Shown here: piece after piece, positions 11,167 through 28,219 of the stretch | How positions within the stretch are numbered: the first letter of the stretch is position 1 | Layout: each line of letters begins with the position of its first letter | From: Octopus sinensis | Lineage: Eukaryota | Length of the DNA stretch: 64,000 nt | Direction: 5' to 3' | NCBI RefSeq assembly: GCF_006345805.1 | Contig: NC_042999.1 | Coordinates: forward strand, 169,694,001-169,758,000 | Position numbers and translations under genes: made by a program | The notes under the pieces: model-generated | Databases searched by the model: none | The model's input: the letters and a program-made list of their open reading frames with translations, nothing else | Told to the model about the DNA's origin: nothing

Positions 11167-11229
11167 TTATGCAAAAGAAAAGCGTTGACGTAAAGCCTTT
11201 GGATTCTCATCATCCTCGTTTGCCAAGTT
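11167..11229 (-). CDS. Candidate terminal exon NLANEDDENPKALRQRFSFA*
   Basis: Acceptor tttttcttttctttacttttctcctcag, phase 0. Confidence 0.5.
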   Translation of the reverse strand, partial: NLANEDDENPKALRQRFSFA

Positions 11230-11694
11230 CTGAGGAGAAAAGTAAAGAAAAGAAAAATGTTACCAAAAGAAGATGCATTAACAATAATAACAATAATAAT
11301 AAATCAAGGATGCAGTGAAAATGCTAGCATAATGTTATGTTGAAATAATTGTAGAAATGTTCATTTTTAGAATATTTTTACTTAAATTTTTCTAATTGGG
11401 TCTACTATAGTAAAGATAATTTGAACAAAGTACAAATACGAAAATTTAAGAGGTTTCCAGGAAAATGGAAATTAGAGTCTTATTGACCATAGAGAATGTT
11501 TCTAAAAAATGGTACCTCATCAGCAATCAGAAAGTGTTGATTGTAAATCTTGGAGAGGATCTACTGACCCAAAACGAGCATCAAGGGATACAAGTTTACT
11601 TAACAGTAAATATAAAAGAGATTTTTTTTAAATTTGAGAATATTTTTGTACTAATATTTGAGTTCCTGCAACTCATTATTTTGTATAAATTGAT

Positions 11695-12112
11695 CAGTGG
11701 CTCCCAAATGGTAGGCAGTGACAGGGTGGGCGGGTTGTGGGATGTTGTGAAAATAAAATTATATTAAAAGAAAATGTGAGTAGTAAGAAACAGAAGGGAG
11801 GGGGGGGGGCCGAACAGCAGAAAGTCTTTAGAGAAGAAGCTCCCCTCATGCAAGTGCTTTGACCCTTAACTATAAGGGTGGGGGATTGCATCCAGGTCAT
11901 GATTCCTGGATACCTCTCTACTGTCACAGTTTATGTTACTGTCCACATTGTAACCCTCCTGGATGGCTAAGTTGCCCCTCAGACAAGGTACCTTGGTTGT
12001 TGTAATCTGTTCAGTCTGATACATATATAAATACTTTCCCTTAATATAAAGGGCACTAAAATGTTTTATTTGATCTCAAGTGTAGCATAAGAAAAATGTC
12101 TAAGAACCACTG
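11695..12112. mobile_element. hAT/Charlie-like non-autonomous element
   Basis: Imperfect TIRs CAGTGGCTCCCAAA / CAGTGGTTCTTAGA; no clear TSD. Confidence 0.45.
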
Positions 12113-13575
12113 CCTTAGACAAGCACAATTACCAACTTAGATAAAAGTAGACTCCTCACTAAATCTAGGGTCAAATGGCCAATACTATATAGAAGGGGTT
12201 CAATTTTAAATATCTCAGATAATTTATAGAGCTGAGTAAATCTGCAGATGGTATTAACCTGTAAAGTGAATTTGAAATATTAATATACTAAAATAAGAAA
12301 ACAAATGTCTGACCAGCAGAATCTCAGAAGAGCAATTTATCTTGAACAATTCAAAATAGAATCATAAGTTACTCTAATTTTATAACCATGGTATCCAAAC
12401 TTCTTCCATATTTCTGGCAGTCAACAAAAATTTTACAAAAAGAGTCTGCTTTGTAATTTTTGCTATTCTTTTTCCAAGATCAAAAAAATATATGAAAGCT
12501 TGTTTGTTACATAATAAATAAAAAAAACTTATCAAGTCGGATAACATTATGAACTCTTATGCTAATTACCTAAGATAACAAGAATATATATTCATCTGAT
12601 TTATAAAAACAAGTTAACCTAATTTGTGTCAGGCTTTGTTCAAAGTAATATTAATGAGAAAACAACACCAAACTGTTTAAAATAAAAGGTTAAACTGTTT
12701 AACTGATAAAGCAAATATTTCTAAAATACAGTCACAAGATACAAAACTGTTTTAAAAGGATATTATTTCAACAAGTCCAAGTAAAACTTCACTAACAGCG
12801 GCAATATGGTTTGGCTGGATTTTGAAGGTAAGAAGAAGTTACTTTAGTCATTTTAGTAAGATTCCAATAATAATTAGTTGACTAGTTAATAAGGTATGAA
12901 TAGTTCAGATAAAGTATTTTATGTTTCAAAGAATTTAGAATATAACGATAATACTGTCTGTATGAAATATTTACTTCATATTATATTTGTTAAAGACTTT
13001 GATTAAATATAGGTAAAATATTGGAGTAAAATATTAGCACCTTTATAACAAACTTGAAGATCATTCAAGTCTGAGTAGGATTCTTTGTTTTATCATTTTC
13101 TACAGAAATTTTAACAAGTATTGTTTTTTTTTACACTTTTATAAATATAAATATCTCTTGTTTGTTTAATTAGTATATACTGGCTTAATGAGTAACCATG
13201 TAGCTAAGAGGAAACTGCTTTTAATTGTGAATGACAATAAATACTGAAGTTAAAGTATGAAATCTAAGAATCACATTAACAAAAATGCTGTTATCATCAA
13301 ATTATTTTAAAAAATCAAAAAAAATCCAAGTGATGACTGCACCAAAAGCATTAATAGCAGCTACTGAGAACAGTCTTAGTTATCATTATACTGAAGAAGG
13401 AAGTTGGCAAGAACCAGAGAAGCAATGTTAAATAAAGGGATTTCAAATGAAGCGGTGTGCAGCTTAGAAGTTCTAAACAATTAAGAATGTCATAGCAGTA
13501 CCAAAAAGTACATATCCCAATACAACATCTTCTGGTTGTGATGTGAAATGACACTGGTAAAAGAATAGATCTTAC

Positions 13576-13657
13576 TATTCTATGCATAGAATAGTCAGAT
13601 CTATTCCAGAGTAGAACATATTTGGGATTTGTCAGAAGTCTATGCTTAGGTTCAAAT
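13576..13657 (-). CDS. Candidate internal exon (R)FEPKHRLLTNPKYVLLWNRSDYSMHRI
   Basis: Acceptor tttctttgtttttaag, donor GTAAGA, phase 2 to 0; the other two frames are closed. Confidence 0.45.
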
Positions 13658-25532: not shown

Positions 25533-25600
25533 CTGAAAGCATCAAAAAAATCTCTACTCGAAATAAAAGAGTTTTCTATTGACTCCAGTTCTGTAACTTT
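25533..25600 (-). CDS. Candidate alternative PFK tail exon KVTELESIENSFISSRDFFDAF(R)
   Basis: Very strong polypyrimidine acceptor, phase 0 in, weak donor CAG/GTTACA phase 2 out. If unspliced it ends ...RLQII*. Confidence 0.45.
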
Positions 25601-27948
25601 CTAAAGAAAATAAAAATGAAATGAGAAAAGAGAAGTCTACAGTAGTTCTGCTTGTGATAAGTTGGTTTTTGTACGTCATCCTAACTGAAGGAGTGAGAAA
25701 GGCTTCTTGAAGAAATTAATATAAAAGAAACAAACAATAAGATAAAACTTATTAACTTGGAGAATAAAATATTTCATATCTAAGGTTTAAATGTAGATTT
25801 ATATAATCAAAACATGTCTTCTTTTACCAAATATGCAAAAATTGTTATTGCATATTTTTTCCTTGAGAGTATATATACCATGAGACACTGAATATAATAG
25901 CTTTTACAAATCACATAATTAGAAATTCCATCCCTTCTAATACTTAAAGTAAAGCACCTTCAGATTTGACTTGTAGTCTGTCATTAATACTTTGTAGTTC
26001 AGTAGACCGAAGTAAGATAGGTCTTTTGATATATTAATAAACATCAATGGATTATACAAGAAGTTTTTAGCCTTAACTTCAAAGATAAAAAGTCAAAAAA
26101 TGTTTGATACAACCTAAATAGATAAAAGGGGAAAAGATAAAGTATTAGAAAGGGAAAAGTAAAAGGAGAAGCAGTGATTGTTTTTGTAAAGCCTGGATGG
26201 GTAACGGCAGTCAAGTTGGGAAAGAAAGAGGCAGCAAGCAGAAATGAGAAGAGAAATATGGAAAGTTTTCAAGAATTGCTTTATTTGTTACAGAATATTT
26301 CACAGAAACGGTTTCTCTGATAGAAATCAGATATAATTGGAGCGAATATTTTTTTTCTAGATTGAATAATTTTCAAGCAAATTAGATAACCTTTCTCCCA
26401 GACTAATATGTTTTCATTCTAATTCTAGGTTTAAAAAATATTTCCTCAAAGATGAAAAAAGTACAAAATATAAGCTAATGATTAAAATAATTAAAATATA
26501 ATTTATATCAAATATTATTTCTTGTTTTTTTTTTTTTTTTAAAGTGGTACTGATAATTTTAATTATTTATTTAAATTACAAACTCCTGTTTACTAACAAA
26601 ACAGTTAACAGAAAACTATCCTATCAGTCAGAGTATTGTACAGAAATACATGTAAAACGATTTGGAATAAATGAAATATAAACAGATCTTTATTGTATTA
26701 AACTAATTATAGCCATTAATTTAGACAAGTAATTATCGTGTGATTTATTAAAAAGGGAAATGATGATGACACCTAACAAGTTTATCATAAAAACAAACTT
26801 TCTAACAGAAAGTTTCCTAAAATTTTGTTCATTCTGCTCATCTTCTATTTTGGCTTTCATTCCTTTTAGAATTGATCACAAAAATCTATTAACAACTTAT
26901 AACAATATCACAGATAAGCAAGTAACAACTATGTAAAATTAAATAGAAGATATGTTTGAAACATTTACTTTTGTTTCTATATAAGTTATTCATCACGGGT
27001 ATCAATAAATGAAAGCAAGCTAGTAAATATATTTCATTTGATATTAAAAACATCAATTATTCCTAAAGTCAATTTCAAACTTTTAGTCGTTAACACCTTG
27101 CAAATTACGCTGCTTCTTTTGGTTTTCATCTAAAATCATTTTTGCAAATTTATTCTGATTCATAATAATTTGTCAAAAATATCAATTCTCTAAAGAGCTG
27201 ATGATTAATTTGAAATACTTTGATGCATTTTTAAACACAATGTTACAGCAATTGTGAAAAAGATCAATGTTAAAAGCATACAAAGTATCCCTATAAGAAT
27301 TCTTTGATCTTAGAATACGTAATTAAGATTCAATTAAAACTAAATTTCATTAAATCATAAAAAAATACAAAAGTATAAAATGTAGCATTGTGTTAAAACA
27401 AATCGAATTAGAAAACTAAATAATTTATAATTGAAAGACTATTTAAAATGTAACAATTTAAAAAAATCAATAGTTTCTTAACTTAAATGAAACCCCTTTA
27501 AATAAACATATACAAATGAGATCAGCAAAAAGCAAATAGGCAAGGATGAAAATAACAAAACAAGGTTAAAGATGAATACAACTTGGAGGTAAAATTTTGG
27601 TTTGGCGATGGAATACTAATAGTTATCAATTTTAAATTCCGCTTGTCTTTTACTAAGCATTTTAGTAAAATTATCATGAATAAGTTACAATTTTAAATAA
27701 AACTTGAAACCAATATGCTTCGAGACAATTTTGATGACTTTTAGAATTAAAGTGGCTAATAAACACTGCATTATAAATCTACCCCGTTTTGAGACATTTT
27801 TCTATAAGAAATTCGAAATAATCTTTAAAAATTGTTAGTAACATAATTTAAAGGATGTGAACATTATTTGAGGATATAGATAGAATATATTTAACAATTT
27901 GAAAAATATATTTCAAATAAATAGAGTTATTATATTCAAAATTCCAAG

Positions 27949-27999
27949 TCAATAAAACTGTTCTTCTTGATGCTGTAAATCTAAATCAGAAAAATGTTC
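27949..27999 (-). CDS. Candidate alternative PFK terminal exon EHFSDLDLQHQEEQFY*
   Basis: Acceptor ttgctttccccttcag, phase 0, 105-nt intron back to the GAG/GTAGAA donor at 28104. No transcript evidence. Confidence 0.5.
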   Translation of the reverse strand, partial: EHFSDLDLQHQEEQFY

Positions 28000-28080
28000 C
28001 TGAAGGGGAAAGCAACAGTTTTCAAACAAAAAATATCCAAAACAAAGATAAATGTCTGATAAATATAGGGAGAAAGGTAA

Positions 28081-28219
28081 CTAAATATTATCTTCATCTT
28101 CTACCTCATCAACACCAGCAGATACGGCTTCTGTGTGATAGGCCACGGCTTCATGCTTGGCCAAGATTCTCAACAGTGAACGTAGTTTTAGCCACCATTG
28201 TTCTTTAGGAATACGTTTC
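28081..28219 (-). CDS. PFK: PFK exon [22 protein letters not shown]...[11 protein letters not shown] (contains internal in-frame donor at 28104)
   Basis: 139 nt to TAG, conserved [10 protein letters not shown] motif. Confidence 0.96.

Follow-up and report, generated by a model that had tools for sequence, protein, structure and literature searches.

This analysis concerns a 64,000-nucleotide stretch of the Octopus sinensis genome (contig NC_042999.1, positions 169,694,001 to 169,758,000 of the forward strand; hereafter the window), which carries on its minus strand a phosphofructokinase (PFK) gene whose last conserved exon can be read through to a nearby stop codon or spliced, from a site within it, to a small coding exon 16.9 kb further downstream. 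The window is 100% identical to the O. sinensis chromosome CM016861.1 over 62.8 kb. A tblastn search with a human PFKM sequence located about 20 PFK exons between 57.4 kb and 28.1 kb, covering both halves of the enzyme, and the exon junctions were refined with a generic splice-site weight matrix. The resulting 749-residue core, encoded by 20 exons of the window, is an exact substring of two public octopus proteins, P0124 and P0127, which differ in their C-terminal tails. The first coding exon (~59 residues in P0124) is absent from the window, and the annotated start of the coding sequence lies ~5 kb past position 64000. Two tandem PFK domains, similarity to animal PFK-1 along the full length and a conserved C-terminal helix place the product among the eukaryotic ATP-dependent PFK-1 enzymes of the duplicated-domain type (PF00365), the main control point of glycolysis, and its best protein matches are animal PFKs carrying PF00365, at 93% for Argonauta and 100% for O. 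sinensis.

The last conserved PFK exon (28219..28081, minus strand) ends in the residues AGVDE, followed by VEDEDNI and a TAG stop codon. The preliminary description of this DNA, prepared from the letters, had pointed to an in-frame donor, GAG/GTAGAA, seven codons before this stop. Direct reading places its GT at 28104-28103, and the site is a real alternative 5' splice site. It divides the ancestral terminal coding exon into a shared part (28105..28219, minus strand), which ends at the internal splice site and belongs to the 749-residue core found in P0124 and P0127, and a read-through segment (28081..28104, minus strand), in which GTAGAA serves as the donor if spliced and otherwise begins the sequence encoding VEDEDNI and the TAG stop (28083..28081). 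Scored with the generic matrix, the GVDE donor reaches 3.8 bits, near the bottom among the real donors of this gene; it is kept in O. bimaculoides, Argonauta and Sepia.

The read-through ending is a genuine isoform, as had been predicted: the 815-residue proteins P0127 (O. vulgaris CAI9720475.1), P0131, P0128 and P0134 all terminate in VEDEDNI. An acidic read-through ending of this kind, with [IA] as its final residue, is common to the PFKs of chiton, Solemya, scallops, oysters and mussels, and because chiton and bivalves end in the same acidic sequence, VEDEDNI is the ancestral mollusc tail. A tail spliced on after GVDE was found in 0 of ~80 isoforms inspected from ten non-cephalopod mollusc clusters, and the joining of the GVDE donor to the distal exon appears confined to coleoids among the sequences compared. 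The putative 3' untranslated region of the read-through mRNA (27130..28080, minus strand) runs to the first AATAAA (27154..27149), which lies 927 nucleotides past the proximal stop and is kept in O. bimaculoides. Identity to O. bimaculoides is 0.93 over 28080..26690, against 0.90 in the rest of the interval, and the Sepia read-through contig extends for at least 405 nucleotides into its 3' untranslated region.

The alternative ending is encoded far downstream. Among the junctions proposed earlier, 28105/11229 proved exact: the 828-residue protein P0124 (O. sinensis XP_029634457.1, identical to O. vulgaris CAI9720474.1) ends AGVDE-NLANEDDENPKALRQRFSFA, and this tail is what 11229..11167 encodes, so the junction is correct. 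The intron that P0124 requires to be removed is 16,875 nucleotides long (11230..28104, minus strand), and the coding part of the distal terminal exon (11167..11229, minus strand) is entered in phase 0 and comprises 20 codons and a TAA stop. Accordingly, the annotated coding range of O. sinensis PFK ends at window position 11167, the last base of this stop codon. The acceptor at 11229 scores 9.9 bits, about the ninth strongest in the interval, and the exon has the attributes of a distal last exon: an acceptor, an in-phase open reading frame, a stop codon and an AATAAA signal. The predicted 3' untranslated region of the distal isoform (10655..11166, minus strand) extends to a conserved AATAAA (10660..10655) and is collinear with O. 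bimaculoides. Comparison of the gene with its protein models indicates that a real splice choice replaces the last seven acidic residues by the 20-residue tail NLANEDDENPKALRQRFSFA.

Annotation of the distal-tail splice exists for three Octopus species and for Argonauta, and every form comprises 808 residues through GVDE. In O. bimaculoides, the distal tail is NLANEEDDNPKSFRQRFSFA (isoform X1, 828 residues, XP_014767605.1) and the read-through form ends in VEDEDNI (X2, 815 residues, XP_014767606.1); in Argonauta hians, the corresponding endings are EIIQNTEEKIIRQHFSLL (826 residues) and VEDEDNI (815 residues). The O. bimaculoides ortholog of this region (L004) aligns collinearly with the window from 28.6 to 10.2 kb at a background identity of 90.6%, and within it the 11229 exon shows no indel, an intact AG and polypyrimidine tract, and an invariant RQRFSFA. 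The gene range of the 826-residue Argonauta protein spans 108 kb and its distal exon is known from the protein model alone; a second Argonauta locus, extending only 10 kb past the proximal stop, does not contain the exon. A cuttlefish cluster includes the distal tails YLFKEEEMNPKVLRHRFSL[AV] and YIFKMEEEMNPKILRHRFSIY, together with read-through VEDEDNI. Aligning six distal tails revealed four invariant positions, K19, R22, F25 and S26, and a tblastn search with the Sepia tail as query matches the 11229 exon of the window with E=5e-4.

The cuttlefish proteins derive from de novo RNA-seq contigs with uninterrupted coding sequences of 2.4-2.5 kb. Several of their run accessions occur in papers on Sepia esculenta larvae, and the transcripts come from whole larvae. 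Three S. esculenta transcript types, each represented by contigs drawn from different runs, are identical through GATGAG and diverge exactly there. In the first (L016, seven contigs), GATGAG is followed by the read-through sequence, GTAGAAGAC and, in the nucleotide-level comparison, GTAGAAGACGAAGACAACATTTAG; in the second (L008, eight contigs), it is followed by the distal exon, TATCTGTTC and TATCTGTTCAAAGAAGAAGAAATGAATCC, respectively. The third type (L012), the most numerous of the three forms with 18 contigs, inserts the 39-nucleotide cassette TTCCTTCATCATTCAACTAATTGATCTGCATTGACAAAG ahead of the distal exon, giving the ending FLHHSTN. These contigs are direct transcript evidence in Sepia that both mRNA forms are made, while the Octopus and Argonauta forms are gene models.

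A third, very short tail is also present in O. bimaculoides. The 810-residue O. bimaculoides protein P0130 (UniRef A0A0L8I1I6) ends in GVDE-TL and a stop, an ending absent from the tails predicted in the preliminary description. Two O. bimaculoides acceptors fit this tail, the orthologs of window positions 23953 and 16169. The former precedes a candidate stop-containing exon (23945..23953, minus strand), cacag/ACA TTG TGA, which would be entered in phase 0 behind an acceptor of 8.6 bits; it is the sole site in the interval of the window where AG is followed by T, L and a stop, and its O. bimaculoides equivalent, at position 46948 of L004, encodes the same two residues and stop. The second candidate is the 16169 acceptor used in phase 0 (16161..16169, minus strand), where the window reads ACT TGG TGA (TW and stop) and O. 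bimaculoides ACT TTG TGA (TL and stop). The Sepia cassette (L012 2576-2614) likewise introduces an in-frame TGA after the GVDE donor and ahead of the distal exon, with no DNA-level match in the window. Its stop lies 15 nucleotides ahead of the last junction, and by the usual 50-55-nucleotide rule of nonsense-mediated decay this transcript should not be a target. Taken together, the TL ending and the Sepia cassette suggest a recurrent short-tail form.

The preliminary description had gone further, placing four additional exons between the donor and 11229 and chaining them into a cassette with five possible tails. Its reading of the letters was accurate throughout: AG dinucleotides precede 27999, 25600, 16169, 13657 and 11229, GT dinucleotides follow 25533 and 13576, and the phases and peptides are as it gave them. 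The tails VEDEDNI and NLANEDDENPKALRQRFSFA stand; the exons at 27999, 25600, 16169 (in the phase proposed) and 13657 occur in no annotated or assembled isoform and are not conserved. The same division appears in O. bimaculoides, where an exon-by-exon comparison finds the 11229 exon kept and the other four failing. Pairwise identity has little power here because the O. bimaculoides background is already 90.6%, and individual exons were judged by their indels, by lost splice dinucleotides and by the catalogued isoforms. Across ~300 kb of cephalopod sequence, each candidate exon is single-copy.

The exon proposed at 27999 (27949..27999, minus strand; EHFSDLDLQHQEEQFY) lies inside the proximal 3' untranslated region. 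Its acceptor, at 13.2 bits, outscores all others in the interval, but O. bimaculoides has AT and Argonauta GT in place of the AG, a 3-nucleotide deletion creates an in-frame TAG in O. bimaculoides, and no 824-residue isoform is known. The possibility that this tail is the ancestral one was considered on the strength of its EH[F/I] motif (compare heterobranch GEHIL and vertebrate LEHI/V) and rejected: chiton and bivalves share the read-through tail, and the AG is missing in O. bimaculoides and Argonauta. The exon proposed at 25600 (25533..25600, minus strand; KVTELESIENSFISSRDFFDAF(R)) has an acceptor of 6.7 bits and a donor of 3.1 bits, both at background level, and a 2-nucleotide deletion in O. 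bimaculoides yields KVTELELIENSYFK and a stop ahead of the 25533 donor, so that the sole proposed route into 16169 and 13657 is closed. In the phase proposed for it, the 16169 exon is shifted out of frame by a 1-nucleotide deletion in O. bimaculoides. The 13657 exon (13576..13657, minus strand; FEPKHRLLTNPKYVLLWNRSDYSMHRI) differs from O. bimaculoides by three indels and, with an identity of 82% against the 90.6% background, diverges faster than its surroundings; its donor is weakened there from GTAAGA to GTAACA, and its reading frame remains open.

A 44-nucleotide near-perfect palindrome (13563-13606, 95% self-complementary), present also in O. vulgaris, overlaps the 13576 donor. Two intronic blocks, 15900-16800 and 12300-12750, are 96-98% identical to O. 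bimaculoides, compared with the 90.6% background, and the first of them surrounds the 16169 acceptor. Both are without an Rfam or Pfam match, and they might represent splicing-regulatory elements or the untranslated region of a minor exon.

The strength of the proposed sites was also compared with the background of the interval. The donors claimed score 3.1-3.8 bits, compared with 2.5-12.6 bits (median 6.7) for 19 real PFK donors. Between 28104 and 11167, acceptor-like sites at or above 4.9 bits, the score of the weakest claimed acceptor, number 105 on the strand of the gene, against 72 on the other strand, which served as control; at or above 6.7 bits there are 47 and 36, and at or above 9.9 bits 9 and 7, respectively. 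Behind sites of this kind, an open tail of 16-27 codons is typical. By the generic matrix, the proposed splice chain as a whole is no more than chance gives, and the sites at 27999, 25600, 16169 (in the phase proposed) and 13657 most likely reflect splice-like motifs arising by chance in AT-rich intron or untranslated sequence. A reading of the sequence alone had thus recovered a true 17-kb splice amid four chance exons. The flanks of the interval had further been called poor in transposable elements: a crude multi-copy test does give 0.00 repeated bases at 12-14 and 24-28 kb, against 0.01-0.22 between them, but this is not distinctive because the same 0.00 is returned by many ordinary bins of PFK introns.

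The full multi-exon cassette, in which the GVDE donor enters 27999, 25600 or 11229, 25600 leads to 16169 or 13657, and 13657 leads to 11229, with five tails differing between tissues, was weighed as a rival reading of the locus. Every motif and phase that it needs is present; its nearest acceptor is the strongest in the interval and lies 105 nucleotides from the donor, in a gene with real introns as short as 106 and 173 nucleotides; Sepia does use a small intermediate cassette exon; and the 13657 frame is open in O. bimaculoides. Set against this, none of the predicted lengths (824, 835, 851 and 878 residues) or matching tails occurs among the 20 members of two cephalopod protein clusters. A protein search with the chained tails also gave no match, although this is a weak negative, given that the index missed known relatives on a short query; a search with the 45-residue last exon returned three short genomic open reading frames from distant taxa and missed the Octopus proteins, which marks the index as patchy for short queries. 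With the lost AG at 27999, the frameshifts at 25600 and 16169, the three indels and below-background identity at 13657, and site strengths equalled by 72-105 background sites, the multi-exon cassette is very improbable. A narrower version, in which O. sinensis and O. vulgaris alone splice to some extent into a new AG at 28001-28000 and make a young 824-residue isoform ending in EHFSDLDLQHQEEQFY, fares somewhat better and is still unlikely. The AG and its strong polypyrimidine tract are identical in these two species and the 105-nucleotide intron fits the size range of this gene, yet the O. vulgaris annotation lists 828-, 815- and 768-residue products only, the donor is weak, and the sequence is best read as conserved proximal 3' untranslated region.

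The opposite concern is that the distal exon itself is an annotation artefact, a chimeric model fusing PFK to an unrelated downstream exon. Octopus and Argonauta are represented by predicted gene models, the intron spans 16.9 kb, and retrotransposon copies fill the region beyond 10.5 kb, all of which would suit such an error. Against it, at least eight de novo contigs of S. esculenta from different runs carry the homologous tail directly after GVDE, Octopus genomes that are ~90% identical, and Argonauta as well, preserve the sequence, phase and position of the exon, and the interval yielded neither a further gene nor a Pfam domain. An artefact is hardly credible on this evidence.

The alternative-last-exon switch is the preferred reading: very probably, a single coleoid PFK-1 gene uses a weak internal donor, a distal last exon and a short-tail route, and the choice among them would be made by competition with polyadenylation and would act on an autoinhibitory tail. 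The donor, the distal exon, the two mRNA and protein forms and their conservation are the observed part of this reading. A weak 5' splice site is made up by the GAG-GTA codons at the E-V boundary of the terminal exon. When the site is ignored, the mRNA ends past the proximal stop and the protein keeps the ancestral acidic tail (815 residues in Octopus); when it is used, the 16.9-kb intron is spliced out and exon 11229..11167 joined in phase 0, giving the 828-residue protein ending in NLANEDDENPKALRQRFSFA. A third route adds a short stop-containing exon and leaves almost no tail, as in the TL form of O. bimaculoides and the FLHHSTN form of Sepia. The outcome may be set by splicing at the weak donor competing with proximal polyadenylation, and the switch may alter the autoinhibitory PFK-1 tail, with effects on ATP inhibition or on a phospho-dependent interaction at R-x-[RH]-F-S-hydrophobic-x-COOH.

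Several points weigh against parts of this reading. Octopus and Argonauta contribute gene models, and direct transcript evidence comes solely from Sepia. For O. sinensis, the 828-residue form is the only one listed in RefSeq, and the case for a read-through tail there is drawn from O. vulgaris, O. bimaculoides, Argonauta and Sepia. Polyadenylation sites and the extents of the 3' untranslated regions were placed by AATAAA motifs alone. Four of the five substitutions in the distal exon between the Octopus species are non-synonymous, so that constraint is concentrated on the last 7-9 residues. Lastly, the functional reading, with a kinase, 14-3-3 or PDZ-type motif in the distal tail and altered ATP inhibition, is pattern-based, and one cuttlefish-group end, SIY, is a poor match to a class I PDZ ligand.

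That the PFK C-terminal tail is a regulatory region, a premise of the preliminary description, is backed by work on human PFKL: its C-terminal tail stabilises the T state, removal of the tail raises the affinity for fructose 6-phosphate and relieves ATP inhibition, and phosphorylation of the tail has been proposed to displace it (PMC11345425). The distal tails were compared with basophilic-kinase, 14-3-3 and class I PDZ-type motif patterns, namely R-x-x-S or R-x-[RH]-F-S with a hydrophobic residue at +1, and [ST]-x-hydrophobic at the C-terminus. The six C-termini read SFA, SFA, SLL, SLA, SLV and SIY, as pattern matches alone. Judged from the sequences, exchanging the acidic residues for the distal tail could plausibly change autoinhibition or add a phospho-dependent or docking site. 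A more specific proposal can be offered only tentatively: the distal tail, K..[LIF]R[QH][RH]FS-hydrophobic-x-COOH, might be a phosphorylation-dependent switch or docking motif that takes the place of the ancestral acidic end, the short form might be an effectively tail-less and less ATP-inhibited enzyme, and the 27999 tail might be a very young isoform of O. vulgaris and O. sinensis. On this proposal, one cephalopod gene would supply differently regulated or localised forms of the enzyme, a task shared among three paralogs in vertebrates.

The switch resembles known systems in part. The immunoglobulin mu secreted/membrane switch is the textbook case of a terminal exon with an internal 5' splice site set against a proximal poly(A) site. 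Like it, coleoid PFK has a weak in-frame donor within its terminal exon, a short tail and stop if the donor is left unspliced, and a distant exon that provides the other C-terminus; unlike it, competition with polyadenylation in octopus is inferred, and the distal unit is a single small exon (in Sepia, that exon preceded by the 39-nucleotide cassette). Vertebrate PFKM has a C-terminal protein kinase A site. The region of the enzyme that varies is the same in vertebrate PFK-1, and the cephalopod distal tail has a basic-x-basic-F-S sequence near its end. However, vertebrates vary the tail through three paralogous genes and coleoids by splicing one, and the tails share no sequence homology. Among molluscs, annotated splicing also changes the PFK C-terminus in the X2/X6 isoforms of Pomacea canaliculata and through alternative last exons in Mytilus. 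Pomacea (P0203, P0209) branches after LAKHK, and Mytilus (P0187-P0199) exchanges its entire last conserved exon for an alternative one; none of these variants has a donor after GVDE or a K..R..FS tail.

As annotation, the 28105/11229 tail switch is already known, because RefSeq, ENA and UniProt contain isoform models identical to it, and as a genome feature it is ordinary, its isoform being already in the RefSeq and ENA annotation. The public Octopus PFK models (XP_029634457.1, CAI9720474.1, CAI9720475.1, XP_014767605.1, XP_014767606.1 and A0A0L8I1I6) describe this gene with these two tails, the 828-residue model being the exact 28105/11229 product; the three further tails proposed earlier are absent from them, and the 810-residue TL model goes beyond those proposals. 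No published description of a coleoid PFK tail switch was found, and the Sepia cassette and the retention of the switch between octopods and cuttlefish may be undescribed and would be modest additions. One weak donor in coleoid PFK-1 appears to yield acidic-tail, basic/hydrophobic-tail and nearly tail-less forms, from octopods to cuttlefish. The arrangement is a simple setting in which metabolic regulation at the level of isoforms can be tested, in animals whose muscle and nervous tissue are very active.

The remaining features of the locus are repeats. The last conserved PFK intron holds a 2-kb microsatellite of (ATAC/AT)n type (30141-32165, period 4/26, ~500 copies), which accounts for a bin with a GC content of 0.19 and a GC skew of -0.91, and a TG-rich array follows at 32186-32440. 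Pfam scanning of the ten longest intronic open reading frames and an Rfam search over 10-29 kb returned nothing. Degenerate retroelement reading-frame fragments lie within PFK introns at 29764-30051 (minus strand) and 22697-23164 (plus strand), the latter with no Pfam match. Just downstream of PFK are two copies of a reverse-transcriptase-type retroelement in opposite orientation (4277-5660, minus strand; 6599-9311, plus strand), with a further segment at 2053-2343, in a region that is 96-99% multi-copy by the crude repeat test; the open reading frames of the two copies are nearly identical (for example, MQFGF.PGKSTTDA.FLV.QLQEKYLAKDKPLYLAFVD).

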